Shown: positions 24,201 through 58,184 of the stretch, in pieces
How positions within the stretch are numbered: position 1 is the stretch's first letter
Layout: each line of letters begins with the position of its first letter
Program-made: the position numbers and the translations under genes
Notes under the pieces: generated by a model
Databases searched by the model: none
What the model saw: the letters and a program-made list of their open reading frames with translations, nothing else
What the model was told of the DNA's origin: nothing
Source: Octopus bimaculoides
Taxonomy: Eukaryota
Direction: 5' to 3'
Length of the DNA: 64,000 nt
Assembly (NCBI RefSeq): GCF_001194135.2
Contig: NC_068983.1
Coordinates: 104,322,214 to 104,386,213, forward strand

Positions 24201-26066
24201 ATAAAAATGTGATGCAAAGGAAATTTGGCTGCTATTTCAAGCGGGTCAAGTAACCCTCTAGAGCAATGGTTCATGACATTTTTTTGTAGCACCCTCCCAC
24301 TCCTAATCCACCCCTGTAAGTAGTTGTTATGCCTAACACCTACATAAGTGGCAAGTGAGGTATGATAACTAAAGTAACATTCTCCATGGATGATAATTTA
24401 TAAATTTTTCTCTAAAAATGGATCATGTAAGCTTTTAACTGTGAAATGATAAAAAATTAATAAAGATAAAAGTTATAAATTTTCTTTATACATTGCAAGT
24501 TAATGACTTTTCCGTGCCTTATGAAACCTCATTTTATTTTAATAACCATTACTAGTTTTACCCTCTATGATATAATTACTACAACAGGTAAAATTTGTTA
24601 CATCACCACCCTCTAAAACCTAATACCCTTTTCTTTGGGGATGGTACTACCCAAGTTTAGGACCTCTGATCTAGAGGCTCCCTCATTAGCTTGAATAGTT
24701 TTTTGGCTTACTTGCTATGTTTTAACTGTGTTCTATGTTAACAGGATTGTAATTTATTAGTTTATTAACCTCATCTTTAGAGATCACTTTTTTTTTTTTA
24801 ATGTTTACATCTACAATTCAACTGATTTCATCTTTTTCCTGGATGTTTACATAGTATCAGACTGGATTTGAACTAAGAATCTTTATTTCTAAACTATGGT
24901 TAACACTTTCGTTACCAACCCGGCTGAAACCGGCTCTGGCTCTGAGTACAAATGTCTTGCTTTCATAAGTTTTGAATTAAAATCTTCCACCAAACCTTAG
25001 TCACAATTTATGTTCCTAACACTAGCTTAATGATAACTAAGTTATTTTACTAAATTCTTTGTTATATTTAAAGTAATTGAAAGAAACACAGAGCATCTCA
25101 AAATAAATACAGTAACGAAAGGGTTAATAATGTTTTTTATCCACTAGGCCACTTGAACATTTTAAAGTTGTACCTATGTTGTATGCTTAAAGTTGTATGC
25201 TTAAAAATTGGTAAAAATTCTGTTGAACTTGTTATTTAATGTGGTCTTCAAATATTGTGCAAGCTACGTTTGGAAGAACTGGGACACATTATCAGTGATG
25301 TATCCTGAAGTCATCAGGTGTTTTGAGCTTTTCAACATCAGACATCTTCACCCAGTGAACCCAACTGAGGTTCATTAGATCTCTCCACTTGCATCCCAGA
25401 AGCAGTCCATAGATCAGCACTTTTTATCCAAATTACATCTGGTAGTTTTCTCTACCATCTCTATGAAGCCCAAGTGGTTGAGAATTGGCCTTCTTCTTCA
25501 CCCTTTCAATGAAGCCAAATTGGTTGAGGGCTTTGCAAGGTGAACACCCTAAAAAGACTCTGGTGCCCACCTCTATCGGCTTTTAATGGATATTCTTAAA
25601 TAGTTAGTGGGATTTATTGATATACAATACGATACCATTCATGGAAATTGAACAACATCAATATTTGAAACAAATTTTGTTGAAAACAATGTCCAGTATT
25701 AAGGTCAAATGTGGACTTGGCTTTCATTTTGAAATGTTGAATTGCTCCTTAACTATCTTACTTCTTGAAGATGTGGATGTTATGTCAGTAGCCTGTTCTG
25801 GAAACCACACATTTGGTAAGAGTTTTCTCTCTTTAATTTCTATATCATGTACAGAGTTTCAAATGATGGTGATGGATCTCTTCATTTGAAAATGAAGCTT
25901 CAGTTGTTCAATCGACTGAATTCATGTGTAAGTGGGCAGAACATTACACTGACATGTGTATGTTCAACATATTTCTCAGACTGATTGGGAAGTCTGTATG
26001 CAAGTGCCCAAATATTTCAACTGGCTGGAAAAATGCAATGGCTATTGAAGTCCTTTGAACTCAACA

Positions 26067-26106
<40 letters not shown>

Positions 26107-27475
26107 NNNNNNNNNNNNNNNNNNNNNNNNNNNNNNNNNNNNNNNNNNNNNNNNNNNNNNNNNNNNNNNNNNNNNNNNNNNNNNNNNNNNNNNNNNNNNN
26201 NNNNNNNNNNNNNNNNNNNNNNNNNNNNNNNNNNNNNNNNNNNNNNNNNNNNNNNNNNNNNNNNNNNNNNNNNNNNNNNNNNNNNNNNNNNNNNNNNNNN
26301 NNNNNNNNNNNNNNNNNNNNNNNNNNNNNNNNNNNNNNNNNNNNNNNNNNNNNNNNNNNNNNNNNNNNNNNNNNNNNNNNNNNNNNNNNNNNNNNNNNNN
26401 NNNNNNNNNNNNNNNNNNNNNNNNNNNNNNNNNNNNNNNNNNNNNNNNNNNNNNNNNNNNNNNNNNNNNNNNNNNNNNNNNNATATATATATATATATAT
26501 ATATATTAATCAATAATTGTGAGTCTGACAAAATATATTCTGTCAGAGTTATGGATTAAAATTTTGACTTTCAAACTTCTTACTTTGAGTTCTTGATTCT
26601 AAATAGTCTGACAGTGTTTCTTTCAACCTGCCACTTTCTGATATATATATAGATACACACACACACACATACATTTCAGTATCACTGCTAAAAGCAGGCA
26701 GCACTAAACTAAAGTTAATCGGTTTATTCTGGTTTCTTTGAAAATATCTTGTTCAACTATTACAGGTCGATGCTGTAAATCCTTACTTCCCTGTAAGGAG
26801 ATTCCTTACCGAAGATGTTCTCTCTGTAGTAGTGTTGCTATGCCGATAAGTGTAACTACTGGTAAGTATATATTTATCTTTCTAAGTACTTTTTCAGTTT
26901 CAGTCTTTCTAGTCATTTTTATGCTTTTAGATTTCAGAAGTTACATGTATTTTATCATTGAATACAGTGTATCTAGTCCTCAGATTTTTTTTGGGGTGGG
27001 GTTATAATTAGTTTGACATTTTGAATCAAATTATTTCATAATAAGTTTACCAAGGTCACAGAATAAACTCACTACACACTAACAAGATAACCATAGCCAC
27101 AGCCACTTCACTTTGCAAAAATAAAGAATAAAGAATAAAAACTACAAAAACATCAGTTGTAAAATAATTACACCAATAATTAGTGCAAATGTGAATTTAG
27201 CCAATCATCATGTCTATTCTAGTATTCAAAGGAAAGTGTAAATAACATTAAGCAAAAAAAAATGTTATGATATGTTATACATTCATGCTATATTTGGTTT
27301 GTAAATTGTAATGTATCAACAAATCAACTACCTTTTAAAAATGTCTATTTTTTCTAAGCTAAAATTGTCTTTTTTTTCTTTTTCACCACCAGATGCAGCA
27401 GGTCTGTGTACAATTGACCCTCATAGTTGTACTTTTTGTGAAGATTCCCTTTGTGGATCAAGATATTTAGTTTAA
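292..27475 (+). CDS. GTF3C4: General transcription factor 3C polypeptide 4 (TFIIIC90/delta) ortholog, 5'-partial, 17 exons: 292-409, 674-752, 1485-1605, 4092-4260, 5869-5948, 7454-7608, 9084-9204, 9869-9952, 13313-13473, 14193-14256, 16805-16952, 17823-17889, 21113-21275, 22871-23026, 25762-25815, 26766-26861, 27393-27475(TAA)
   Basis: The exons join in frame (1919 nt, about 638 aa plus stop) using GT-AG sites and one AT-AC intron. Peptides match remembered GTF3C4 motifs: GYKSANWSPKGADDVGRCVLACLAIDHRLTI (cf. GFKYTSWSPMGCDANGRCLLAALTMDNRLTI), AMKNGDVVFWKVHFP, IGVALSPNASLLAVV, and the C-terminal Cys-rich domain EEDCPICGELLEDVDVMSVACSGNHTFGRCCKSLLPCKEIPYRRCSLC...SCTFCEDSL. An AATAAA follows near 27572. 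Confidence 0.9.
1023..1407 (-). mobile_element. tRNA-derived SINE (octopus OR1-like) with (CAA)n tail
   Basis: tRNA-like head with A/B boxes on the minus strand (GGAGGCGCAATGG...GGTTTCGATTCCCAGACC). 12-bp TSD AGTATGAACTTT at 1011-1022 and 1408-1419. Nearly identical to 28579-28952. Confidence 0.85.
1745..3517 (+). mobile_element. RTE-clade LINE, internally deleted and decayed (APE endonuclease, post-RT C-terminus, 3' UTR, (GAT)n tail)
   Basis: ORF 1756-2304 has AP-endonuclease motifs (CCIQEVRW, GVGGVGILL, IISAYAPQ, GEFNGHVG). ORF 2443-2829 has ARVRIAWAKFRKLLPLL...KGRLYDACVQTAMLHGSETW. The element ends TTAAATGATGATGATGA. Confidence 0.85.
4320..4546. mobile_element. piggyBac-type MITE family (similar elements about 19715-19941, 24900-25107, 33395-33605, 46317-46440, 47228-47562, 48376-48512)
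   Basis: Ends TTAA-CCCTTTAGCATT ... AATGCTAAAGGG-TTAA, i.e. CCC/GGG termini within TTAA. Confidence 0.7.
5400..5692. repeat. Minisatellite, about 26-bp unit GTGGTACCAGCACCAGTGCTTTT(T)AC, about 11 copies
   Basis: Directly visible tandem units with no unique spacers, inside an RTE-tail repeat. Confidence 0.9.
6648..7025 (-). mobile_element. Abundant tRNA-headed SINE with internal (TA/CA)n (other copies about 12650-13045 -, 23085-23780 -, 23945-24205 +, 28265-28430 -, 29520-29765 -, 32650-32822 -, 49225-49375 +, 58225-58608 +)
   Basis: Head GGCTGTGTGGTAAG...GGGTTCAGTCCCACT, then GGCACCTTGGGCAAGTGTCTTCTACTATAGCC, and tail GACTGAAACAAGTAAAAGAGTA, repeated throughout the window. Confidence 0.8.
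10724..10940. mobile_element. mariner-type MITE family (other copies about 14853-15072, 15390-15460 partial, 55333-55560)
   Basis: TIR GAGGGGTGCTGAAAAGTTCCTGG / CCAGGAACTTTTCAGCA and a shared internal sequence among copies. Confidence 0.7.
11385..12030 (-). mobile_element. RTE 3'-UTR-derived repeat with (GAT)n tail (other copies about 5255-5700 -, 14325-14610 +, 21458-21730 -, 49380-49680 +, 56540-56770 -, 57835-58175 +; related subfamily about 28050-28260, 29320-29520, 31975-32200, 35380-35630)
   Basis: Shares CAGCTGGATGCCCTTCCTAACGCCAACCAC and GGAAAGCGGACGTTAAACGATGATG with the 3' end of the RTE at 3300-3517. Confidence 0.8.
16990..17745 (-). mobile_element. RTE-type LINE 3' fragment in GTF3C4 intron 11
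   Basis: Minus-strand peptides VTARVRLGWVKFRECGVLL...KGKVYRSCVRAAMLYGSETW and WYGHVMR, with frameshifts. Confidence 0.8.
23470..23710 (+). mobile_element. Second tRNA-headed SINE family, nested in an older SINE (other copies about 32450-32625 +, 36410-36642 -, 37705-37916 -; three degenerate tandem copies 20383-21040 -)
   Basis: GGCGAGCTGGCAGAAACGTTAGCACGCC...GAGTTCAAATTCCGCCGAGGTCGAC...GCCCCTTGTGGGCAATAAA, with 11-bp TSD ATAGAAAACAC at 23459-23469 and 23711-23721. Confidence 0.8.
24264..24668. mobile_element. Older hAT (Charlie-like) MITE
   Basis: Degenerate CAATGGTTC.../...GGACCTCTG ends flanked by CTCTAGAG and ATCTAGAG (NTCTAGAN target). Confidence 0.55.
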
Positions 27476-28578
27476 TTCAGTCACTTCTCCACCATCTGAA
27501 TTCATTATCATTTAGTAATCTCAGAATATTCAATCACTGTAATTCAGTATTTCAGTGCTTTCGGGCTTAAAATAAAGTCATTTTATACTTTTTGCCATAT
27601 TGAACTCCCGCCTCTCTGTTTATTATACTACTTGAATTGTTATACCACTTGATCAAAGAACCAGCAATTAAGCTTCTACTTAAATTACTGCATTTTCTGG
27701 GATCCAAGTGAAATTTTTCAGTTCAAATTTTGCAGCCAAAAATGGTAGGTTAACTTATATACCAAGATGATTTTGGAGGACCAAAAATTCTATGTGAAAT
27801 GCAGCAGGATTTGGAAATATAGTGACAATGTTTGAATATTTACACTGTGTGCAATGTCAGCTTGTATGCTGGAAAATATGGTTATGTGACCAATGATTTT
27901 CGTTCATGAATCCCTTGCAAGTACAAACTCTCCATGTTCAAAACTTCAGTACCAATTGATGCATACCAAGAAGATAGATTAAGTTCCAGAAATGGTCAGT
28001 TAATACAAAGTGAACAGGTTTTGTGGATACATATCATCAACATTTACTGCCCACTTTTCCATGCTTGCATGGGCCAGATGAAATTTGTTGAGGTAAATAT
28101 TTTATGGCCCTTCCTGTCACCAACTCTCACCTGTTTCCAAGCAAGATAATATTTTCCATTAGTTAGACATGTTTTTCACAGAAGATTGGAAACAAATGAT
28201 CTTGCTTGTATATTATGATGCTCATTTACAGCCATCACATGATGTCTAGACAAGGAAGCACACACACACAAAAACAGGCTTCTTTCAGCTTCCATCTATA
28301 AAATCCATTCACAAGGTTTTCGTCTGCTTGAAGCTATAGTAGAAGACACTTGGCCAAGGTGCTGTGTAATGGAACTGAACTTAAGACCACATGATTGGAA
28401 AACAAGCTTCTTAACCACACAGCCTACTTCTGCACATACAGATTTCAGTTAATTTGTTCAACAAAATTAAATACCTGCTCATTTATAACTCTCATGTTCA
28501 TCATAGTCATTCATTAAAAAACATGATGAGGAAGAAAGCAGCAACAACTTAGAATAGTAGAGGAGATGCTGAAAGTAT

Positions 28579-30224: not shown

Positions 30225-30826
30225 CAATGTTCTACAACTGGATGCCCTTCCTAACGCCAACCACTCAGAGAGTGTAGTGGGTGCTTTTACGTGTCACCCG
30301 CACGAAAACGGCCACGCTCGAAATGGTGTCTTTTATGTGCCACCCGCACAAGCCAGTCCAGGGGCACTGGCAACGATCTCGCTCGAAAATCCTACGGGAG
30401 CCAGTCAGGCGGTACTGGCAACGCCCACGCTCAAAATGGTGCATCTCATGTGCCACCCGCACAAGAACCAGTCCAGGGGCACTGGCAACGATCTTACTTG
30501 GCTTGCCGGGTCTTCTCACGCACAGCACATTTCCAAAGGTCTCGGTCAGTAGTCATCGCCTCGGTGAGGCCCAATGTACGAAGGTCTTGCCTCACCACCT
30601 CAGCCCAGGTCTTCCTGGGCCTACCTCTTCCACGGGTTCCCTCAACTGTTAGGGTGTGGCACTTTTTCACGCAGCTATCCTCATCCATTCTCACATGTCC
30701 ATACCAGCGCAATCGTCTCTCTTGCACACCACAACTGATGCTTCTAATGTTCAGCTTTTCTCTCAAGATACTTACACTCTGACGGGTATTCACATTGACA
30801 TTACACATCCAACGGAGCATACCTAC
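30225..30826 (-). mobile_element. RTE LINE 3' fragment about 100 bp downstream of the LRRC14-like stop codon
   Basis: ORF 30494-30820 (MLRWMCNV...RRLRWYGHVRMDEDSCVKKC...GRGRPRKTW) followed by the RTE 3' UTR also seen at 3050-3517. Confidence 0.85.
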
Positions 30827-30931: not shown

Positions 30932-33900
30932 TTAGTAAGTATCAGGAGTAATTTTAAAATAGACTTTAAGTCCTGTATTTCTTCTGTTCTGTAGAAGTAT
31001 TGTGTGAATTTGTTTTGGTATATCTCCTGCTATGAAACCAGTGCTGTCTATACTGAGACCCATCTCAATATGACTAGTAAAACATATGTGTTTTAAGTTA
31101 GCAGCATTGCAGATTGTTCGTAACAATTTAAACATGTCAGACTCACAAATTACTGTTGAACACAAATTTAGGTACTCAAGTTTTTCCATTTGACAAACCA
31201 TTCTCCCAAGATCTTCCATATGATGACTTGAAAGCCTGGAATTTTGTACTTCAAAATGCTTTAAGTTTTTGCGAGCTGCACTTAAAAATTCTAACATGGG
31301 TTGTAATTTGTCACTTAAATTGTTTTCACTCAAGTCCAAATGAATCAGGCCAGTGGTGTGAATGCATTTGGACAGATAGTTTAAATCTCCAATAGATATA
31401 CTGCAACCAGAGATACAGAGAGATTCAAGAGGCTGTGATATTCTAGAAAGTAGTAAATGAAGGTTTCCTTTTATCCAGTTGTTGCTCATATTCAGTTCTT
31501 TCAAGCAGCTGAGCTGTGCAAAAAGTTCTCCTAGAATTTGTGTACCAAAGTTAAAATGATCCTGTAGGCGTATGTTGTTGCAAGACAGATCTAGATGGGT
31601 CAACCTTGTCATTATTCGAAGGAAAGGTGACAAGGCTACTACTCCACGCACCATCAAATGGTTGTACCTCAGAGTGATTTCATGAATATACTGTAAATTG
31701 AAAAGAAAGAAATTTAGCAGAACAACAATATTAATCATAATTAATAAGACACATAACATCAAATTCTGCATAAGACACCATTTCCATCCACATCATTGAA
31801 CACGAAGTCGAACAAGAAATTATATACATGTACATACATATTTTACTTGATATTTCATTTAAAAAAGGATAGCTTAGTACCTATAAACTTTTGATGATCA
31901 CATAAGTTGTGAACAGAAAAGCAGGCTGATATTAATAATAATTAACATTTCACTTAAGTTGTTGAGTACTTTGTATCATCATCATTTTAATGTCCACATT
32001 TCTATGCTTGCTTGGGTTGCACAGTGCTTATTGAGGCAGATTTTCTATAGCCAGAGGCCTTTCTTGTCACCAGCTCTCACCTATTTTCAAGTAAGGTAAT
32101 ATTTCCTCTTTGGCCAGACATGCTTTTGTAGAATATTGGAAAAGAATGACAGCGACATTTGTTTACAACCATGTGATGTCAAGACAAAGATACATACACA
32201 CACACACACACACACACATATACATATATATATATATATCATCATCATCATTTAGCATCCGTTTTTCATGAATTTACAACTGGATGGCCTTCCTATTATC
32301 AACCACTCCACAGAGTGTACTGGGTGTCTTTTACATGTCATCGGCAAGGGTACCTTTCACATGGCACTGGCCACAACTACGATTTCACTTAGCTCGATGT
32401 GGCTTCTCAAGCACAGGAAATTGCCAGGAATCACAGTAAGGCGGCGAGCTAGCAGAAACATTAGCACGCCAGGCGAAATGCTTAGCGGTAGTTTGTCTGC
32501 CATTACGTTCGTCCTTTCGGGGTCGATAAATTAAGTACCAGTTACTCACTGGGGGTCGATGTAATCGATTTAATCCCTTTGTTTGTCCCCTCTATGTTTA
32601 GCCCCTTGTGGGCAATAAAGAAATAAAAAATCTCAGTCACTAGTGATATATGATAGGCTTCTTTCAGATTCCATTTAGCAAATAAGAGCTAATTCATGGG
32701 TGGAAAATGATGAGCTTCAATGCAGTGAAAGACTCTTGCCCAAGGTACCACACATTGAGGTTCAACTTGAGATCATGTGGTTGGGAAGCAAACTTCTTGA
32801 CCACACATCTACACCTGCACCTATAGTGCAATTAAATTCTTGAGCTGAATCTGGGGTTCATTTCAATTGTTAGTTCTGTTATACATTCACTTATACCACT
32901 GTTGCTTCTACATTGTACCCCTATGCTTGTCTAATCAAATATAGGTGCACCACCTTTACTGCATGAGTGGACAAACCTCTATCTGTTCTAATTCTAACAA
33001 CTCTTAGATGAATTACCCATATATTTACTTTTATTCTAACATACATTTGCTTTGTTATCTTGGTCCATGTCCTATCTTGTATGAAATGAAAAAAAAAGAA
33101 AAACTGAAGCTCAACATTTTCCAGCCATGAATTAGCTCTTAAATAGAGTTGATTCATCATTACAATCAGCTGATGTTCTGCACCCAACACTTTCTACTTG
33201 ACCTTGATTGCAAAGCTAAGGAAGTAATATCACTTCCTCAAAGTGGAATGAAGGAAGTGTGTTATTCTTTCATTCTAGTTTAGAAAATGACTATTTGATA
33301 GTATATAAGATGCACAATTTTTTTTCCCCAAAATAAAGGTCTCTAAAAAAATCACTCCAGGCCCTATATGTGAAGTTGGGTCTTCCAAAAGCTTTAACCC
33401 TTAAGCATTCAGATTACTTTGTCAAATATAATGCTTATTTATTCACATTGTTTTGAATTAGTCACACATTATTTCACAGCTTCAAAATTTTGATGATGTG
33501 ATTGTTTATTTTTAGAATGACATTGAAAGATATGTGTGAGAGGCTGGATCTGGTTGGTTTGAACATAAAACAAGTTGAATATTTTGGCCAGTTTGAAGGG
33601 TTAATTTACTAAAAAAATTTATCCTGCATATGTGCTGCTGATATTGGGGGTGTAACTAATATGTCTGCATTTTTTATGCCATCAAATACAGTACTTTTAA
33701 AAAATAAAAATTCAGTTACCTCTCTGCCACTCAGTAGTTCCAGCAAACGTTTGATAACAATGTATGGCATTGATCGAATGTCTAGTCTGTTGATTTGTAT
33801 TTTTAAGCGACAATTCATACATTTTGCCAAAGCTTCTCCCAGTTTTTTGAAAGTATCTGCTCTGGTCAAAACAGCATTTAACCGTATTGCCACTGAAAAA

Positions 33901-36900
33901 TAAAACATCAGAGAAATTACGCCATATATTTTTGAAATAAAGATTCATTGATAATATACATACAGATTTAAGACTTTGTATTTTTCTTTGCTTATTACCA
34001 TATTGGTACAAAATTAGCCGATGAAAGAGAATTGTTGCAGCAGTGTGATTAGCTGTCGGAGAAGACTAATGAATACAGATATATTAGTACAGAAATTAGG
34101 TTTGCACATGAGTAAAATGTTGAATAGTAGCTGAAATTCAATCATGAATATGTTGAGAAAGAGATGACCTGACATAAGTTAAAAAATTGCAAATGTTTCA
34201 ATTAAATTAGATAAGGTTAGGCAATAGCAAGTGACATTGTAAGAATTGAAGTCACTAAATATGAAACATTACAAATGAGGATTGGTGCTTTGGTCTATTT
34301 GATTCCTACCCTGAGGATTCTTTCGAGCAATGAAAGCAAATATTCATTAGTAATATTTTGCCACTCCTCTTGTAAGAGTGTCCAGAGGGTTTCTGCACTA
34401 CTTGGTTGTTGCTTTTTGACTCTCTGATCCAATTTATCCCACACAATTTCAATGGGATTGCAATCGGGATCCCATTACAGTCAACTTTTTTTGCATAGCT
34501 TAGAAGTATGTTTAGGATCATTATCTTGCATCAGCACAAAATTATCACTGATCAGTCTCATCCCAGATGGACTGCCATGATGCTGGAGGATAGAGTGATA
34601 CCTGTTTTGGTTCAATATTCTTGCTACCAGATGAACATCTCCAGCACTATTGCATGTAAAACATCCCCAGATCATCACATTCCCCCCACCACCACCACCA
34701 CCATGCTTTACAGTTGGAACTATACACTCAGGAGTCACCTGTTCACCAATTCTTCACCTCACATAAATTACATTGGAATCCGAATCAGTCCAGAAGACAC
34801 ATTTGTATTGATCAATGGTCCAGGGTTGGTGTTTTTTGGCCCATATGATTCACTTACGTTTATTCACAGGTTAAAGCAGTGATTCTCTGGCAGCACAATA
34901 ATCATTTAGACCGGCAGCAATAAGTCTACTCCTCACAGTTGTAGGAGACATATTAGCTTTGCCAGCTTCACTTATTTGTACAATTTCATTTGCTGTCAGG
35001 TGCCTGTTTTGGAGACTAGTGACTCTGATGAATTAATTTATCCTGTGATTTAGGAGTTTCTTTTGGATGACATGACAGAGCTGTTGTTATTTTTTCCTGT
35101 TTCATTATACCATACAATAGTGGAGTAGAAATATGACTATTAGCATATAAAACATGTAGTGTAGGAAACTTTAACTTCTTTGGCTATATCTTGAAAACTA
35201 TAACCTTCACTACATAATGTGACAATGCTTTGTCTCTTTTCAGGTGATAAATTACTGGTTTTGCCTATCTTTAGGTTGATTTTTAGGAATTTCACTAATT
35301 TTACTTGATTTTAATAATTGAACCTGAAAGAAGCAATAACACATTTAATGCAGTCATTAAATGATGTTATTTCAACCGACAGCACATAAAGAGTGTAAAT
35401 AATCAAAATGTATTGCAATGTTGCCAAAATGATTGTCACCATCATGTAAGCATGTTCTTTGTTTCCAATCTTCCATGAAAAATATATCTGGTCATGAAGA
35501 AATATTACCTTGCTTGGAAACATATGAAAACCAGTGACAGGAAGGATAGCCAACCATAGATAATCTGCTTCAACAAATTCCATTCAACCCATGCAAGCAT
35601 GGAAAAGTGGACATTAAAATGAGTGATGATGAAATGAGTGGGATAAAATTCAAACTAGGAAATTTAGTCCAGTACTCTAACACTAATTAATAACAATTAA
35701 ACCATTTACAGTTAATCTAAACTATTACAGTTGTTAGAAAAAAGAAGTTTCAAAACAAAAATATATGAACTTGTACAAGATTATAAAATATAGTTTCTGT
35801 TGTCTTTGGAGTTCTTTCGTCTTTGTAAACACCGGAGGTGTTTACAAAAGTGGAAAATTCTTTCTATTCTAGGTACAAGGCCTGGAATTTTGTGGGAGGG
35901 AGCTAAATTACATCAACCCAGTACTTGACTGGTACTTATTTTATTGACCCTGCCAAAAAGATGTAAGGTAAAGTCGACCTCAGCTGACATTGAAATCTGA
36001 TTGTAATGAGAAATACCACTAAGCATTTTCTCTGACATACAAACAATTCTGTCAGCTTGCTTGCTACCTTGGAAAACATAATATAATGAAAGCTATTGAA
36101 TTTATGCCATCAAACAATTATAAGAATACACTGAAATTTAATTGATTGAAAGAACTGTTTTATTGTTCTTACCAGATTGTATATTTTTTCTAGGAGTAAA
36201 GTTTTGATTTCCAATGACATATTCACACAGTTTCAGCAGTTTAGGGTCATCTGAAATAAATATCAGTAAAAAATAATTTCCAAAAGAAACAAAATTGTTT
36301 TCTTTATGAATAGAGTTAGTCATTTACTATTTGGTTACATTCAGTCAAATGAGTCAACAAAGGAACTTCGAAATAGTAACTCTACCAAGCCAAAACTTAA
36401 ATTGCGGTTTCTTTATTGCCCACAAGGGGCTAAACATAGAGGGGGCAAACAAGGACAGACAAACGGATTAAGTCAATTATATCGACCCCAGTGCATAACT
36501 GGTACTTATTTAATTGACCCCGAAAGGATGAAAGGCAAAGTCGACCTCGGCGGAATTTGAACTCAGAACGTAGCGGCAGACGAAATACCGCTAAGCATTT
36601 CGCCCAGCATGCTAACGATTCTGCCAGCTTCCCGCCTTCCAAAACTTAAATTGCATCTCACATTGCACTTAACCATCTTAAAAAGGACCAATACATTAGA
36701 TAATGTAATCCTGAAATAACTTTGATTACAGATCTGCTCAATCAGGGCTGACATGGAGATAAGCAATATCATCATTCAGTCCTTTAAACTTCTTTAAAAT
36801 ATATTTTAATTACCATTCTTATGATGGTCAATGGCAGAATCTACAGAGCAGCAAAGTGCTTTGTGGTATTCAGTTACTCCCCTTCATGTAGAATTCAAAT

Positions 36901-38184
36901 CTTACTATGATTAATTTTACTTTTCATTCTCATGTGGTTAATAAGTACCAGTCATGTACTAAAGTTGAAAAAGAAAAGTTTTTCTCCCATAAAAGTGGTC
37001 TAGTACATCATCTTCAAAGAGACTCTGACAAGCTGATCAAGTAGCTGGTTTGTTCCAGAGGACTTTCAGGCTAGGGCCCATGGATAATTTCCAGAAATCC
37101 CTTATCTGACAGTGCTACTGAGGAGCACTGCCAACTAAAGATAAACTCCACAGTGGCACCTGCCTGAGATGCAGGCACAGCAATGAAATTGTTCTGTATG
37201 CACTCACCCTGTACCCAAACACTGCTAACTTGTGGAGTTATGTTGAACATCTAGTCACATGTAGGATGGATTTTGTCATTAAATGAGTTTGTTGTGGAGA
37301 TCATCTCACAACTTTCCTTTGGCCAGAAATGACAGGCAGTATTCATTTGTCTGGTGACTCTTGCAAAAAGAGGTTCTGTAGTAGACCAGATTGAAAAGAC
37401 TGAAGACAGACACCGCCACCTTCTTTGGCCAAGCTCTCATCAACTTTTACAATTGTTTTGAAAAAGAAAGCGAAAGTAGAGAGGGAAGGTCTACCTTCCA
37501 GTGAATTTGTTAAAAGGTAGTGGTGAATACAATCCGAGTAAATAGCCACCTTTAGAATGAATGAAGACAACAGAGAGAAGGCACTTGTCTTAGTGGTCAG
37601 AGTGACATGGTTTTGCATGGTTTCCAGATGTAGCTTTCAGAAGCCTCCCTCTTTTGGGTAATTATTCATTATTGTAATTTACTGCCAATTTTATTTTTCT
37701 TATTTCTTTATTGCCCACAAGGGGCTAAACATAGAGGGGACAAACGGATTAAGTCGATTATATCGACCTCCGTGCATAACTGGTACTTATTTAATCGACC
37801 TCGAAAGTATGAAAGGCAAAGTCGACCTCGGCGGAATTTGAACTCAGAACGTAACGGCAGATGAAATACCGCTAAGCATTTCGCCTGATGTGTTAACGTT
37901 TCTGCCAGCTCGCCGCATTTTTATTTTTCTGTTTACGCACTCTTTCATGTAATACCACATTTTATTGTTCTTGATCATTTTGTGAACCTTTAGTGGTTAA
38001 CAAAGAAAATGTTGTGTGGAAGGTATTTATAAGCTATTTAGGAAACACACAAAAGCCGTTAGATTCACTTCAACATTTAAATTTAATTTGCCAAAATATT
38101 TTCATCGCTTTGAGACCCTGACCTGTTCACTGACAAAATTCTGTGCTGCATCTGAGAAAGTAACAGTTCATGATATATATGTAC

Positions 38185-38224
<40 letters not shown>

Positions 38225-38658
38225 GTGCGTGTGTGTGTATATATGTATGTATGTATGTGTGTGTACATGTATGTGCGTATGCATGTGTATATGCGTATGC
38301 ATGTGTGCATGCCTTTATGCATGTATGTATGTATGTACTTATGTATGTACGTGAGTATTTAGGTAAGTGTGTAGACGTGTCTGTGTGTGTACATGTGAAC
38401 GTATGTTTATGTACTAACGTGTGTCTGTACAAGTTCTATACATGACTGTTACTTTGTTGATTGTATATACACACATATACATATGCGTGTGAGTTTTTCT
38501 CTCTCACCATTGTCTAATGGTGAATGGATACGTCTTAGATACATATAGGCACATATAACCTTACTTATACATATAGACAAGTACACACAATCATATAGAC
38601 ACTCACACACACTTACAAATATATGTAAAATCTTAAAGTATACACACATACGCTTATC

Positions 38659-38723
<65 letters not shown>

Positions 38724-41700
38724 CACTATTTTCAAGGACAATGGTTAAAATTCAAATTTGCTTTATTTTATTTTATTCTTTTTTTTTACACGCATACATA
38801 TACACTAACATATTCACACAACACATACACACGCATACATCTACACGTGTATTTTAGTATCATGCATCTCAACATGTGTGTATGGATTTCCACATGTAAA
38901 TGAGAGAGAGGGGTGGTTATAGAGGGGTACTCCCGAGTGGCATCTGAATGTTACCCCATTCGGATTTACAGTTGAGAGTGAGTTTGTATTCTTGTATACA
39001 GACAGCTTCAGTGACTTGTCTCAGCATTGCATCAGTGGGATGTGTGGATAAGATGTTTAACTTAAGTTTCCCTAAGGAGCCCTTGTGGCAGTCTACAGCA
39101 TGCTGATAGAAGATGGAGGTTGGTTTCTTTTCAATGTAGTTGTCCAGGTGTTCTTTGAACCTATCATTGATACTCCTAGAAGTCTCACTAATGTATGACT
39201 CTGGGTTACTCGCGCAAACTCCTTCTTGGTATTTAATCTGGTATACAGTGCTCTTGGTTTTGAAGTTTACATGTGGGTTTGGAGAACATACTGCACAATT
39301 ATTTTGACACGTGATTCTATCAAATGGATATGATCTACATAATACAGATTTGATAGTCCTACCTGTCTTTTCTACAACTTTGATCTTAAGGCCAGTTGTG
39401 CGCAAGATTTTCTTGAATGCTTTACTTAATTTGTTCTTAGGTGTGGCATCAACAAACATTACACAGTGTATATACATACATACATACATACATACATACA
39501 TACATACATACACACATACATACGTACATATATATCATGAACTAACTGTTACTTTCTCAGATGTCACACAGAATTTTGTCAGTGAACAGGTCGCAGTCTC
39601 AAAGCAATGAAAATATTTTGGCAAATTAAATTTAAATGTTGAAGTGAATCTAACGGTTTTTGTGTGTTTCTTAAATGGCTTATAAACATCTCCCACACTG
39701 CATTTGTTTTCGTTCCAGCACACGATTTCAGATCAGGTCACTTGTTATGCAAGTACATCTCTGTAAAGAAAATGTTATTTTTTATTATTATCCTTTTTAT
39801 CCCTTTTCATTATTATTATTTTTAAACTCTTTATTCTGTTTCCTCCCTATACAAACAACATAAAATACATACATTCTTTGCACAATGTAAAGAGGTATGA
39901 CTTAATGCTAGTTTGATGAAGTGCCACTACATGCAATGTAGTTTGAATGGAGTGGTACAGAAACAACTGTAAGAAATATCAAACTTGTACTATATTTGCT
40001 CTCCATCTCCTTATATGGTACATTTCATAATGCTTATATACCGCTTTTACCAGTAAAGCACTTGGAGTTTGTACATCAGTGGATTTCCAATTTTTCTCAG
40101 TTATTGTATAAGAGTGTAGATAGCCAAGAGCTCATATAGAGTGCTGTATTGGAAATACACTGATTTTTTTTTACCCTACCAGGATCTATACTATATACAT
40201 ATAAATTACACACATAGATACACATGAAATTGATAATTCATTCTGATGTTGTTAAGACTTTTTTGCAATATGCAATCTTTCTGGCAACGAAATGATCACA
40301 CAAAGAGACACTCAGAATAATGATGGAGTGAATAATCAGCTTCAAAACTTTATATACATGAGGTGAAAATATTTCAAATGTATACTTGCATGGTGTGGAA
40401 CAAATATACTGCATATATTTGTTTCACACCATGCTTTTACATGCATGTCAACTTTGTTTTTCTGCTCTTAAAAGGTTAATAAGTTTCTGGGTTTTACCTC
40501 TTAAAATAAGTGCCAGAGGTCAATACAACTACAACCTTTTGAAGGTGATGCCCCAGCATGGCTGCAATCCAATGATTGAATCCAATAAAAGAGTATATGC
40601 ATTAAGCAATTACATAGTTCAATGTCTACAGACTCTGTACTTAGACACATCACTAGTATTGAATCCTGGAGCTACTGGATGTTTTGGGTCTTACAACATA
40701 TGGTGCTCTACTAACCCCATAACTCACCTCTCTTCAATTAGAACTAAGTAGATACTTTCTCAGCAACCTCTAAGTTGTTCTAGATGGTTCTTCTTCTGCT
40801 CATTCCTGTAATGCCCAATGTTTGATCTGCAAATCATTGATTGCCCACCTTCTGGAACTCAGCTCTCTTCCTCTCCCAATATACAGTTAACTCCACTAGG
40901 ATGAGCTAACTTGTTGCTTCAGAAACCAAAATATCTGGTATCAACACATTCTCAGTCATATTTGATGTAAATTTTAGCTCATTCTCTAGCTCAACTTTCA
41001 TCACGCAGTCATGTGCTGTAGAAATCAAGCTATCAGAGATATCCTTGGTTCATTTTTCAGCCATGCTCCCTTTCTTTAACGTAGTGTGGACATTTCTGCT
41101 GTCACTTGATCCTCTTGCTGAACATCACTTGAGAATCTAAATGTGAAGGCAGTCACAGTGTCCTTCATTTAGTGCCTCAGAACAGCTGCTTTGAATGTGT
41201 TCGGGAGGGCGGGGGCTCTCTTAGAACAGGGGTTTTCAAACTGTGGCCCGCGGACCACAGGGGGTCCGCAAGGACAAGACGGGATCCGTAGACAGCAAAT
41301 AGTTTTTATGGGCAATTTGATTTTATATATGTTTTTTAATCGAAATCTTTTGACAATAAACCTATTCGTTAAATACTGTTAAATAAATAAATGTAAAAAT
41401 GTTATTTTAAGCAAATATTTATGTATAAATTTCATAAGCGTTTATAAGGGGGTCCCTAAGGTAAAACCTGAAATATAAAGGGGTCCGCAAGTCAAAAAGT
41501 TTGAAAACCCTTGTCTTAGAACACAAGTGTCATGCAGGTGTTTTCATTTCTGTCTTATGTAAACAGGTTGGATGGTCTGGGAAGGACATCATAAACCCTC
41601 TGTAGGTTCTACTTTTACATCCACCAGGTGACATTCTGCTCTATCGTCTACTGCCACTTCATTCAGACACATTTTCTGCCTTGCCCCCATTCTTTCTCCA

Positions 41701-44700
41701 ATGATTCTCACACATCTTCAAGTACCAACTTCCCCTCTCCTTCCAATTAGTTGTGTCATATCGAGTTGATGCACCTCTGGGTCCAGATTACTATATAAAG
41801 TTCTACAAATAGTCTTGAAAGAAAAATTTACCATATATGATTTGATATATAAATCTTTATTGAATAGAATATAAGAAATAGAATTAGTTATTTTACAATA
41901 ACTAGTTTACAATACTATTGGGTTGGTGCATAATTATTGCGGCTTTTTTTCAACAAAAACAATAACATGGAACAAAAACATCTTTAAATGATTATTCTGG
42001 AGCATATTCACTATCTACTTCAATTTAAAGATATTGTTAAATATTGTTATTGTTTTTGTTGAATAAAATTTGTAGAAAACAAAAAAAAAAGCCGCAATAA
42101 TTATGCACCAACCTAGTAGCATAACAAAAGAGAAAGTAAACAATTGCAGTAAGAAAGCGGAGTGTAGTTTAGAGTTATTCCCCTTCAGTCTTCCTGCTAG
42201 GTGGCAGTAGTGGTGACTAATATAAATTGCACCTCAAGCCTCGTTTCGGTCTTTCTGACTAAAGATGCCGAAGCAGAAGTTTGAGAGGAAGAAGTCTTCT
42301 ATGAATGATGTTATTACTAAGGAATGTACCATTCATCTACACAAGAAAGTCTATGGCGTGAAGCTGAAGAAAAAGGCACCAAAAGCCATAAAAAAGATCA
42401 AGTTGTTCGCCGAAAAGATGATGCGAACCAGGGACGTTCGTATTGACACAAAGCTGAACAAACACATTTGGTCTAAAGGTATCCGACATGTACCTTTCCG
42501 CGTTCGTGTTAAGCTTTCTCGCCGACGTAATGAAGATGAAGATTCACCACACAAACTCTACACACTTGTCTCTCATGTTCCATGTGCTACTTTCAAAAAT
42601 CTTCAGACAATGAATGTAGATAATGAATGAAGAACTTTTTTCTCCATCCGTGTTAACGAACACGTGGCTCTCAATTCCCCCGATTGGCCTTATTAACCAA
42701 TTTGGCTTCGTTTAACAACACAAGGGAAAAAGACACACCTGTGAAAAATGACTGTTTAGACTTTAATTTTTTTTTTCTAATTATTCTAATCAGAAATTGT
42801 TCATTTTCACGCAATGCGTGTCAAGAATAAAGGAGTGTATTGGAGGTATAATTTTCTTTACTTTAATTTTGTGTTCGCTGTTCATGAAAATATCCTGTTT
42901 CTACCATCATTATTTACGTTGTCATTTATATCCATTGAACACGTAATATGTCTGATTTATTCGATATTCTTATTTGATTTCCATTTAAAAATCCTATTTC
43001 ACTTATCGGTTAACATTCTGAATTTCGTTCCGACAATATGGATGCCATTTTTATTCTGAAGCGAGGCTCGCATGGCGGTCAATAGCTTTCAATCACTTAG
43101 AGCCAAAATTGCAATACTGCCGTTACGTTCTTACCTAATTAAAAGGTTTACTGTAAAAGAATAGTGTGTCCCCATAGACACTAAACAGGGTTACGTTTAC
43201 CCTGTGGATCCATATAAAAACGGGGGGGGGGGATCGAAATTTTGAAATTGAGATTTTTGAAAAATTTTTTTTTCAGAATCGGAATCTCCATAGCCTAAAA
43301 CGTGGGATTCTGTAAAAAAAAAAAGGGGAGGAAGGGTTCAGATTTACATATAGTCCATCTGGACCGACGGTATTCCCTAACCCTAACACCCTAACGAAGA
43401 TCGTGCGGGTGTTAATCTGAAAAATTACCCACAATCCATGTCTTGTATTAAATTCTGAATTCTTTAATGTATTTTATTACTATTTATAATATACATAGCA
43501 TATTGATTGGTAATGAAGTGATACGAACGAGTTAGGTTGGCTCGTGCAATTTAATGGCGTACACGTGGTTCGTTTTCATAGTAATAAATGTAATACCTAG
43601 AGTTTTATGACTTGCGATGATGCAAATTGTAAAGCCATATCGGTTATGCAGGCGATAAAGTAGTTCATGTTCGACTGGGTTCTCAGATTAGTGACCAGTG
43701 ATTTAGCTTTATAATCTATTCCCCCGAACATTCAGTTTGATTACTCTAAAAACCATCCCAATCTTCATTTGTTTGTGCACTATATATCTTAGTCGAAAAG
43801 GTGGGGGTGCGGTCCATGCCCTTTACCTTCGGATAGCTCGCTCAGGGGGTGTTTCGGAATAATTCATCCATATTTGTTTCATTTTCTCCGTTTTGTGTGT
43901 TTGTGCATCCGTAGATTTCTACTGAAGCAACAAACCGGCAAATGAAGCCCTCAACAGAAAACCCGTTATGCTAAAAATAACAGCTACCGGTACACAGAAG
44001 TATGCTTATTAAGACAACTTATCTGTTGCATACGATTTTTTTAAAGTTCCCAGGTAAACGTTTCTAATAGGCAGAAGCATAAATAACGAATATACACGCT
44101 CAGTTAGAAGTGTAAAGTATAATTTGTAGATCTATTCTATCTCAATCACAGATTATTTTTTTAATTGATTTTGCTACATAATTTTTAATAAACATGATAT
44201 TGAATGAAATAATTCCCCGTTTGAACTTTTTTTCATTACGTGTGTGTGTGTAGAAAACTACGGATGCACAAAGTGGAGAATATAAAATATAGACAACTTG
44301 TTCCGAAACACCCTCGAATGGGGATTGGTCCTCAAAAGTAATGCCCGAAATTCCTGTCCTCGGAATTTGCAGGGAATTTCATTTAAAAATATCCAAGACC
44401 CCCCCCCCCCAAATCGTATATTCGGAATCTACACATTCGCAGAAAATTTTATTTAAAAAATATCCATTTTCTCCAAAGTTATGATCATCGAAAGTCGGAG
44501 GGGCAGAAATCTGTAGTTATGTCTTTAGATGTACCATTTTATCAGCTGTAAGACCAAAATAAAAACTCAATATTTCGTGTGTATATACTGACGTTGAAAT
44601 TATTCATAATTAACCAAACAAGAGTGGTGAAATGTAAGTCAAGTAACATTTGTGTTTTTAACACAATGTAGATACATTTTACTTAAGCGTTTTTGCGTGT

Positions 44701-45674
44701 TGGTAAAATAGAAAACGAGAAAATGTCCGTCTCATAAGGAAATTGTCTTAAGTTATAGCTCTAAAAACCCATTGCCAACGATAGTCATCCACACCTCGGA
44801 TATATTTTTGTCAGATCCCCCTAACCATTTCATTTATTAGCTGACTGTTGACAAACCACACGTCAATGCCTGCATCAAGAAAGTCAAACGATCTTGATTC
44901 TTATTTAAAATCGTTTTGGTAATAGTTTGACTATTACAATTCTGTAGAGATGAGGATAAATTTTTTAAGTTCAGGGACTTGTAAACATGCAAACTAGTGA
45001 TCCTAAACAGAATGAAAAAGCTGGCAGGGTCTGCAGAAATTGCAGGTAATAAACTGAAAGAGTGAAACTGATTTTTGTGGAAAATGACTTGATTACAAAC
45101 ATATTCTTTAACAGTTAAAGATTTTGAGAAAGTGGCCCAGAGGCAATATGAGAAATAATACAAAGTACCAGTCATTTGATTTTTAAAAAATATATTGATT
45201 TCATATGAAATGTCAAAGTACTTAGCACTTACCTATATTAAAACCGCTTAAGTCCAACAACTGCAATGTTAGAGGAAGTTCCCTTTCTAAGCAATGAAGA
45301 AGTTTATGAACAAATGTTGTAATAATGAAGTTGGGTAAGTAGTATTTCTCTTCTGCCCATGTACAAGGTACTACTGTACTAAATGATGTATAATGATCAT
45401 GAACTAAATCAAAGACACTCATTTTCTGATCTGGCCAGTTTGGTAATAAGAAGTTTAAAGCCCTATCTCGATGGCCAACAACTGCAAATCCTGTGAGAGT
45501 TCTATAGAGGTGTGATGGAAGATAATCCAAGGCTTGCAAAGTTAATGAGGCATGTTGAACAACATATTGGCAGCAAAGGTCAAGAAGAGAGTTTGATCGA
45601 ATGTTACTTGTATTGATATAAAGATCCTGGTCATATGTGTAAGTACACACTCCTTCAACATGGTGCACTAACAT
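30932..45674 (-). CDS. LRRC14: LRRC14/PRAME-family leucine-rich-repeat protein, about 483 aa; coding exons 45674-45233, 36250-36173, 33892-33720, 31690-30932
   Basis: GT-AG boundaries with consistent phases (442+78+173+759 nt). The N-terminus [12 protein letters not shown]...[13 protein letters not shown]...LQLLDLSG and the C-terminal LRRs ([56 protein letters not shown]) match the remembered LRRC14/PRAME architecture. A CAG acceptor 8 nt before the ATG implies an upstream UTR exon. Confidence 0.8.
34330..35200 (-). mobile_element. Tc1-family transposase pseudogene in LRRC14-like intron 2
   Basis: [29 protein letters not shown] and [14 protein letters not shown], plus upstream HTH-like [13 protein letters not shown]; stops and frameshifts present. 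Confidence 0.8.
38175..38720. repeat. Compound microsatellite field (GT)n/(GTAT)n/(CT)n/(TA)n
   Basis: Directly visible; explains the low-complexity ORFs in the track. Confidence 0.9.
38917..39465 (-). mobile_element. Penelope-like element 3' fragment with GIY-YIG endonuclease domain
   Basis: VMFVDATP...[16 protein letters not shown]...STVYQIK...[16 protein letters not shown]...HAVDCH...RQVTEAVCI...LNCKSEW. This is the remembered PLE GIY-YIG layout, with decayed YIG (YIS) and Cys positions. Confidence 0.8.
41227..41513. mobile_element. hAT (Charlie-like) MITE
   Basis: TIRs CAGGGGTTTTCAAACT / AGTTTGAAAACCCTTG and perfect 8-bp TSD TCTTAGAA on both sides. Confidence 0.85.
41918..42116. mobile_element. 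mariner-type (MADE1/Hsmar1-like) MITE upstream of RPL31
   Basis: About 30-bp TIRs TTGGGTTGGTGCATAATTATTGCGGCTTTTTT / AAAAAAGCCGCAATAATTATGCACCAACCTAG, flanked by TA on both sides. Confidence 0.8.
42221..42258 (+). promoter_or_regulatory. Candidate core promoter of the RPL31 copy: TATA box plus TCT/5'TOP initiator
   Basis: TATAAAT at 42221-42227 and T-C(42251)-TTTCT exactly 30 nt downstream, 14 nt before the ATG. A possible polyA signal AATAAA lies at 42826-42831. Confidence 0.55.
42265..42630 (+). CDS. RPL31: 60S ribosomal protein L31 (eL31), intact intronless diverged copy nested antisense in intron 1 of the LRRC14-like gene
   Basis: 121-aa ORF with signature segments [46 protein letters not shown] and [11 protein letters not shown]; no stops, frameshifts or introns. 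Confidence 0.92.
43846..44314. mobile_element. MITE with terminal and internal inverted repeats
   Basis: GGGTGTTTCGGAA / TTCCGAAACACCC at the ends and internal TTTGTGCATCCGTAG / CTACGGATGCACAAA. Confidence 0.55.
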
Positions 45675-57721: not shown

Positions 57722-58184
57722 TACACACACACATAACACATGTATATATATATGAATGTATGTATTTATATATATATATATATACATATATATGTGTGTG
57801 TGTGTGTGTACATATATATATTTCCTTTTGATCATTGGACCTCATGAAGGCAAAGTGGCTGAGTTTCTTTCGAGTGTTGGACCTCACAGAGGCAATGACT
57901 GAGGCCTTTGGCATTATGCCATGATTAAGAAAAAGACTTATCAAGCTGAGCAAAATCACAGTCGTGGCAGATACCAGTGCCGTGCAAATTGGCACCCATG
58001 CTGGTGGCACGTAAAAGCACCCATTACACTCTCAGAGTTGTTGGTATTAGGAGGGCATCCTGCTGTAGAAAACCATGCCAAATCAGACTGGAGTCTGGTG
58101 CAGCCTTCCAGCATGTCAAACCATCCAACCCATGCCAGCATAGACAACAGACATTAAATGGTGATGGTGATCATGATGATGATG

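Follow-up and report, generated by a model that had tools for sequence, protein, structure and literature searches.

Does an intron-free ribosomal-protein gene that lies antisense within an intron of another gene represent a specialised paralog, a dead copy or the working gene of the genome? The question is raised by a 64,000-nucleotide (nt) stretch of Octopus bimaculoides DNA (GCA_001194135.2, chromosome CM046603.1, near 104.36 Mb; herein the window), in which a preliminary description, made from the letters alone, had recognised a reading frame for the large-subunit ribosomal protein eL31 (RPL31) and proposed it as a tissue-specific paralog for a specialised ribosome. The evidence set out below makes it very probable that this locus is the canonical, working eL31 gene of O. 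bimaculoides and, as far as tested, the sole functional one.

The eL31 gene and its conservation in octopods

The intact, intronless open reading frame (ORF) of 121 amino acids (aa) is present as first described. Its coordinates, those of the conserved sequence around it and the identities to the argonaut Argonauta hians are as follows (CDS, coding sequence; UTR, untranslated region; TOP, terminal oligopyrimidine).

Before 42196, + strand: upstream flank; identity to Argonauta at random level, with similarity beginning abruptly at 42196
42196 to 42250, + strand: conserved core promoter, containing GCTAGGTGGCAG (42196 to 42207) and TATAAAT (42221 to 42227); 75 to 81% identity
42250 to 42256, + strand: TCT/5'TOP-type polypyrimidine initiator TCTTTCT, with the predicted start at C 42251; the same in O. 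sinensis and Argonauta
42251 to 42264, + strand: predicted 5'UTR of 14 nt (CTTTCTGACTAAAG), counted from the predicted start at C 42251
42265 to 42630, + strand: eL31 CDS, a single uninterrupted exon from ATG to TGA (121 codons plus TGA); 91% identity
42631 to 42860, + strand: 3'UTR to the end of the conserved block, containing the 11-mer AACACGTGGCT (42659 to 42669) and AATAAA (42826 to 42831); 76% identity (ungapped)
After 42860, + strand: downstream flank; identity at random level

The ORF matches the Pfam family Ribosomal_L31e (PF01198) with 132.2 bits (E = 7.7e-39; cut-off, 25 bits) over profile positions 1 through 81 of 82. Its product is identical at 121 of 121 residues (100%) to chain d of PDB entry 9EHO, “Large ribosomal subunit protein eL31”, a 3.2 Å cryo-electron microscopy model of purified O. 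bimaculoides ribosomes (bioRxiv 10.64898/2026.06.25.734654). From end to end, the ORF is collinear with the eL31 chains of solved eukaryotic ribosomes. Matches were found to 56 distinct PDB sequences, which include the Drosophila chain of 4v6w (1.5e-49) and a 125-aa chain, 22tu, which is found in 222 PDB entries and is of mammalian type judging by its sequence (3.9e-48). The 90% cluster of the ORF also contains O. sinensis XP_029633486, named “60S ribosomal protein L31” in RefSeq, and the A. hians protein. As the octopus sequence is already annotated and in use for a published structure, there is little new in the identification itself.

In both O. sinensis (contig L003) and A. hians (contig L002), a single 366-nt eL31 exon lies on the opposite strand inside a 483-aa PRAME_C/leucine-rich repeat (LRR) gene, and the ORF is intact in all three octopods. 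The segment from 42196 to 42860 is the sole block that can be aligned between Octopus and Argonauta within the 9-kb first intron of this host gene. Ratios of non-synonymous to synonymous substitution rates (dN/dS), calculated by the Nei-Gojobori method (NG86), are 0.074 for O. bimaculoides versus Argonauta and 0.029 for O. sinensis versus Argonauta; the value for O. bimaculoides versus O. sinensis (0.21) derives from only five non-synonymous and six synonymous differences. Between octopods and cuttlefish, dN is 0.05 to 0.07 and dS is saturated. The structure, position and sequence of eL31 are thus kept across Octopoda. The values against Argonauta, which are not near 1, support an old locus under strong purifying selection, in line with what the preliminary description had proposed.

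In animal genomes, most ribosomal-protein copies without introns are pseudogenes, and a dead processed pseudogene or a chance ORF was therefore weighed as a candidate. It was rejected as having next to no probability, given an ORF intact in three octopods, dN/dS of 0.03 to 0.07, a conserved promoter and poly(A) signal, and identity to the chain in 9EHO.

The host gene was delineated from splice sites and conservation (a slash marks an exon border).

45233 to 45674, − strand: host coding exon 1 (PRAME_C/LRR gene, 483 aa), from ATG to G/GTAAGT; 81% identical to Argonauta L002 12925 to 13412
36173 to 36250, − strand: host coding exon 2, with CAG/ and /GTAAGA borders; within a block 89% identical to Argonauta
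33720 to 33892, − strand: host coding exon 3, with splice borders; in a block 82% identical to Argonauta
30932 to 31690, − strand: host coding exon 4, with leucine-rich repeats (Pfam LRR_1, LRR_4 and LRR_6) and the stop codon; 86% identical to Argonauta

Together these exons make up exactly 483 codons, the length of the annotated product. From the exon coordinates and this sum it follows that eL31 lies in host intron 1 (36251 to 45232), which encloses the whole unit from 42196 to 42860 in antisense orientation and confirms the nesting in an LRR gene seen earlier. Host exons 1 and 3 taken alone have no Pfam match, and Pfam scans of the 13 other large ORFs of the window returned no domains except the LRRs of the last host exon.

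Promoter and predicted transcript ends

The spacing of the transcription signals given in the preliminary description is accurate: TATAAAT lies 30 nt before TCTTTCT, and AATAAA, which had been placed about 200 nt past the stop codon, lies 196 nt 3' of it. Were C 42251 the first transcribed base, the TATA box would have its T at −30; position −2 of the initiator is G. Argonauta retains all three elements, GCTAGGTGGCAG, TATA box and TCT initiator, and this conserved core bears out the earlier suggestion that the gene has a promoter of its own. Also as described, no A-tract follows AATAAA and no direct repeat flanks the unit. In the 3'UTR, GTCAAGAATAAAGGAGTGTA is kept in three octopods.

A search for TATA(20-24 nt)YCTTTYY on both strands of the window gives a single occurrence, at eL31. 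First-order Markov simulations predict 0.35 per window by chance, so that the count by itself is not significant; the weight of the motif comes from its site 14 nt 5' of the ATG and from its conservation in Argonauta. On these signals, eL31 would be transcribed as an independent unit of about 600 nt with one exon, in which the TATA box at −30 and the TCT initiator would direct the synthesis of an mRNA beginning CTTTCT, that is, a 5'TOP mRNA. Like other TOP mRNAs, it would be subject to the usual growth-dependent translational control. The predicted message would encode the 121-aa chain seen in the model of the octopus 60S subunit.

Some further features of the flanks and UTRs were observed. 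GCTAGGTGGCAG forms the upstream border of the conserved promoter block, about 50 nt 5' of the predicted start, and includes a CAGGTG E-box; its Argonauta counterpart is GCCAGGTGGCAG (L002 about 9932 to 9945). By eye, it resembles a CTCF-type core (CCASYAGRKGGCRS, 12 to 13 of 14 positions), a likeness of sequence alone. The 11-mer AACACGTGGCT, which holds a CACGTG E-box, recurs in Octopus, Argonauta and every cuttlefish contig, 25 to 50 nt past the stop codon (in L004 at about 1634 to 1644). The octopod and cuttlefish 3'UTRs are otherwise unalignable, and we roughly estimate the probability of such a shared 11-mer arising by chance at a few percent. Scans with Rfam (over the whole window) and for tRNAs found no small nucleolar RNA (snoRNA) or other RNA in the rather long 3'UTR. 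A palindrome resembling a miniature inverted-repeat transposable element (MITE) occupies 41912 to 42122, about 130 bp 5' of the eL31 start; its outer arms of 39 nt are 92% complementary and enclose a second, nested inverted repeat. O. sinensis has the palindrome at the corresponding site; in Argonauta it cannot be aligned.

Cuttlefish genes and the search for a second eL31

The next-closest protein (P0002) is 88% identical and is encoded on dozens of short-read contigs from cuttlefish. From their papers, the source runs were identified as genomic reads of Acanthosepion (Sepia) esculentum (ERR12945500), larval RNA-seq of Sepia esculenta (SRR25097173) and a whole-animal transcriptome of Sepia pharaonis (SRR3011300). 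The 366-nt CDS is uninterrupted in the contigs from all these runs. The genomic contigs have a 5'UTR intron (GTAAGT...TTTTAAAG) of roughly 120 to 130 nt, which ends 18 nt 5' of the ATG, and exactly this segment is missing from contigs L006, L018 and L019. L018 comes from an identified transcriptome run; L006 and L019 were taken to be RNA-derived because they have the same exact junction. The spliced intron means that the cuttlefish gene is expressed and has two exons, of which the first is non-coding and the other contains the rest. The cuttlefish mRNA contig L018 starts in a CTTTTCCCCCC tract, a TOP-type 5' end equivalent to the C/T-rich initiator of the octopus, and the final 8 to 10 nt of the octopus 5'UTR (GRCTAAAG) are also found in the second cuttlefish exon. 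At −30, the cuttlefish promoter lacks a TATA box. No match to the host exons was found on the cuttlefish contigs, which at 3 kb or less are too short for this comparison.

Two contigs have unusual 5' junctions. In cuttlefish contig L017 (ERR4009593), positions 1 to 300 hold what resembles the 3' end of an eL43 (RPL37A-like) mRNA, complete with AATAAA, fused directly to the T-run of the eL31 5'UTR; this looks like an assembly chimera of two abundant ribosomal-protein mRNAs. Contig L016 has a comparable odd junction within codons 3 and 4.

Octopus, Argonauta and cuttlefish share K19, K28, Y30, K33, L34, K37, K40, K44, R54 and C107, sites at which 92 to 99% of 118 eL31 sequences from other animals differ. 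The preliminary description had called the octopus protein diverged, with differences that were mostly arginine to lysine and a few that were radical. The unusual residues are real; they do not mark a paralog, as Argonauta and cuttlefish share them. The proportion of arginine-to-lysine changes was overstated (7 of the 39 differences from the metazoan majority). Between the two changes named as radical, GF-to-KL stands, being unique to coleoids (0 of 118 other sequences, with G and F 95 to 96% conserved elsewhere); Y-to-C does not, C being the residue there in 31% of other animals. The mean identity of coleoid eL31 to the 118 other animals is 0.64, versus 0.71 to 0.75 for chiton, brachiopod, annelid, nemertean and sea-urchin sequences, and its K/(K+R) ratio is 0.69, versus a maximum of 0.63 elsewhere. 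With coleoids sampled through Octopus, Argonauta and three cuttlefish sequence types, the CDS structure and odd residues shared by cuttlefish identify the intron-free, lysine-rich eL31 as the canonical gene of coleoids as a whole. The faster evolution belongs to the one gene of the lineage and not to a side copy. As a candidate idea, some of its lysine codons, at positions occupied by arginine in all other animals, could be edited back to arginine by adenosine-to-inosine (A-to-I) editing, K-to-R being a one-step change and coleoids editing heavily; if true, this would make for editing-dependent ribosome heterogeneity.

The searches for paralogs covered predicted proteins. No further cephalopod eL31 appeared when the octopus protein was the query, nor among the best 120 of the 1989 hits to chiton eL31. 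All of these best 120 hits are at least 72% identical to the chiton protein, and the named ones are lophotrochozoan, arthropod and vertebrate. Octopus eL31 is 67.5% identical to chiton (tblastn); given this difference, an annotated octopus paralog of ancestral type should have surfaced.

Two partial sequences were recovered. The first annotation of O. bimaculoides contributed UniProt A0A0L8GYI3 (P0123), a fragment of 70 aa with two differences from the window protein (K56 and V16L); a database look-up for it returned no record. Contig L014 (SRR16213285) matches window positions 42269 to 42795 over its positions 759 to 1286, with 98.7% identity across CDS and 3'UTR. The 745 nt upstream of the match in L014 are unrelated, the normal ATG is replaced and the encoded protein starts MIKAKQK...; L014 has K56, as do other octopods, and the window has R56. 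L014 may be a 5'-truncated retrocopy or an assembly or RNA-seq chimera. Neither A0A0L8GYI3 nor L014 is an intron-bearing parent.

These results bear directly on the proposal that the locus is a retrogene used in particular tissues beside an intron-containing canonical RPL31. Mammals have functional ribosomal-protein retrogene paralogs such as RPL10L and RPL39L, and the intronless CDS, the many changes at otherwise invariant sites with the resulting low mean identity, and the new genomic context nested within an intron would all suit such a gene. Nevertheless, the octopus ribosome was modelled with this very sequence, the O. sinensis orthologue bears the RefSeq L31 name, and the long-diverged cuttlefish express the same protein type, their orthologue having been assembled from both whole-animal and larval RNA-seq. 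Two database searches yielded no ancestral-type cephalopod eL31. We therefore regard a specialised-ribosome paralog as very improbable: as far as the searches reach, this is the only RPL31 of the genome, and the canonical one.

Several points weigh against the conclusion that this is the sole, working eL31 gene transcribed as described above. The identity with 9EHO is identity with a sequence chosen by the depositors and constitutes no independent peptide evidence. A second, unannotated eL31 gene is possible, the searched set being predicted proteins, and A0A0L8GYI3 and L014 indicate that extra partial copies or assembly chimeras exist. The transcription start and poly(A) site of the octopus gene are predictions from motifs and conservation.

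Origin of the intron-free gene and comparison with known systems

In other molluscs, the eL31 gene is long and interrupted. It spans 5.0 kb in a chiton (contig L015), 4.6 kb in an abalone (L026) and 6.9 kb in a clam (L027), and its CDS has three introns at shared positions in all of them, after the equivalent of octopus V32 and near codons 75 and 113. As these three molluscs share the CDS introns, the intron-free CDS of the octopus is supported as the derived state, and the preliminary description was fair in offering a retrogene or an intron-lost locus as alternatives. A polypyrimidine-CAG acceptor 0 to 4 nt 5' of the ATG indicates that chiton, abalone and clam also have a 5'UTR intron. None of the three has a gene overlapping eL31 or called within 10 kb of it, and host-like exons are absent; PRAME-like or TFIIIC-like neighbours were likewise not found within 10 kb, a comparison made over deep divergence and short flanks.

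We consider it most likely that, ahead of the octopod-decapod split, the three CDS introns were lost together by way of a reverse-transcribed mRNA. The remaining 5'UTR intron would have been dropped later in octopods, leaving the promoter no more than 14 nt from the ATG. Literature on intron loss in cephalopod ribosomal-protein genes and on orphan ribosomal-protein retrogenes was searched, and nothing specific was found. Codons 33 and 34 (42361 to 42366), which encode the coleoid KL, are the first two that follow the site at which the ancestral gene had its first CDS intron; their placement may be a coincidence or a scar of intron removal.

A reverse-transcribed message could have acted in place, the complementary DNA (cDNA) recombining with the original gene and erasing its three CDS introns while the 5'-most intron and the promoter were spared. 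When introns are lost through reverse transcriptase, survival of the 5'-most one is the classical signature. The cuttlefish 5'UTR intron, which ends 18 nt before the ATG and so near the acceptor of chiton, abalone and clam, argues for such a history, and the T-rich ...CTAAAG/ATG stretch of coleoids resembles a fossil acceptor. The genomic context argues otherwise. With no gene overlapping eL31 or lying within 10 kb of it in three non-cephalopod molluscs, the nesting is probably a derived state, which suits relocation more than loss of introns at the old site; under the latter, how eL31 came to lie within a PRAME-like gene would call for a separate explanation. A burst of substitutions at invariant sites is also more typical of a relocated duplicate. 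We would put recombination in place at a little below an even chance.

Relocation is offered by the alternative that the coding introns were lost through retroposition and that the parent gene then disappeared, leaving an “orphan” retrogene (a term used in PMC11295320). The source could have been fully processed, with the promoter, and in cuttlefish a 5' exon as well, gained later; or it could have been a semi-processed transcript, initiated upstream, that brought intron 1 and the promoter along. Retroposition would account for the disappearance of all three CDS introns at once, for the antisense insertion into the intron of an unrelated gene, found in none of the other molluscs, and for accelerated evolution on the coleoid stem followed by tight constraint. 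A full-length ribosomal-protein retrocopy would also be expected to bring most of the TCT initiator with it, since that motif starts at +1. The cuttlefish 5'UTR intron points the opposite way from relocation: a fully processed source requires a new cuttlefish intron almost exactly at the ancestral site. No relic of the parent is known. The locus retains neither a poly(A) remnant nor a target-site duplication, which is weak evidence because decay of both is expected at an age shared with cuttlefish. Retroposition followed by loss of the parent thus also stands slightly short of an even chance. A semi-processed transcript, like that behind the rodent Ins1 gene, would reconcile the 5'UTR intron with the new nested position and the burst.

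A more specific scenario can be sketched, which we hold to be possible and rather doubtful. On the coleoid stem, a reverse-transcribed copy in the intron of a PRAME-like gene would have replaced the intron-bearing eL31, passed through a brief burst of change at about 10 otherwise invariant sites and then been frozen as the only eL31 in ribosomes of the squid, cuttlefish and octopus type. Seven of the burst changes would be arginine to lysine, and GF-to-KL would fall exactly at the former first CDS exon junction.

Beyond the eL31 unit, the surroundings of the host gene hold a few recognisable elements. Three + strand blocks (25728 to 25819, 26764 to 26875 and 27390 to 27477) are 79 to 88% identical to the last exons of an Argonauta gene with a TFIIIC_delta domain (L002 1 to 3682), so that the same neighbour lies upstream of the host in Octopus and Argonauta. 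A dispersed repeat of about 150 bp, resembling a short interspersed nuclear element (SINE), is present in many copies and both orientations (3377 to 3434, 11384 to 11540, 14458 to 14616, 21451 to 21607, 30230 to 30270, 58031 to 58183 and others), and several copies at 68 to 88% identity occur at the Argonauta locus. A long (TG/CA)n-type microsatellite at 38100 to 38450 gives rise to spurious C/V/H/T-rich ORFs on both strands.

The assignment of the locus as the canonical gene removes a false lead, as it leaves here no evidence for an octopus specialised-ribosome paralog. It also provides a case in which, throughout an animal clade, a core ribosomal-protein gene has lost all coding introns; the gene is nested as well and has clade-specific substitutions at sites that almost all other animals conserve. 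Such a case is of some use for studies of intron loss and retrogene replacement, and it may interest those at work on lineage-specific features of ribosomes in cephalopods, for whom a question would be whether the changes in coleoid eL31, near the exit tunnel, affect function.

Set beside canonical metazoan RPL31/eL31 genes (human RPL31 and those of chiton, abalone and clam), the octopus gene encodes the same full-length family with the same place in the 60S subunit, and it is alike in its predicted TOP/TCT-type pyrimidine start and strong purifying selection. It differs in having zero CDS introns, where the other molluscs have three, in lacking a 5'UTR intron, in its antisense nesting and, as do the other coleoid genes, in roughly ten substitutions at sites at least 90% conserved elsewhere. 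TCT promoters of ribosomal-protein genes in Drosophila and human offer a parallel for the start site: the octopod TCTTTCT, conserved and situated at the predicted start, is YC(+1)TTTYY-like. In flies, TCT promoters typically lack a TATA box, and TATA-like boxes occur in some mammalian ribosomal-protein promoters; the octopus gene differs in its consensus TATA at −30.

Rodent preproinsulin I (Ins1) is the textbook semi-processed functional retrogene and coexists with its parent, Ins2. Were eL31 a retrogene, it would resemble Ins1 in the loss of downstream introns, in the 5'UTR intron kept in cuttlefish and in a promoter of its own. The difference is that Ins2 is present, whereas no parent of eL31 was seen and retroposition is here a proposed route. 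Orphan retrogenes, retrocopies that have replaced the parental gene, have been described for mammals. They are matched by eL31 as a single intron-free housekeeping gene whose intron-containing parent was not detected; eL31 departs from them in the cuttlefish 5'UTR intron, whose ancestral-like position makes loss in place equally likely. Finally, paralogs of the RPL10L, RPL39L and RPL3L type are tissue-restricted and coexist with a canonical copy. Octopus eL31 is like them in being intron-free and under selection, but it appears to be the canonical copy itself.

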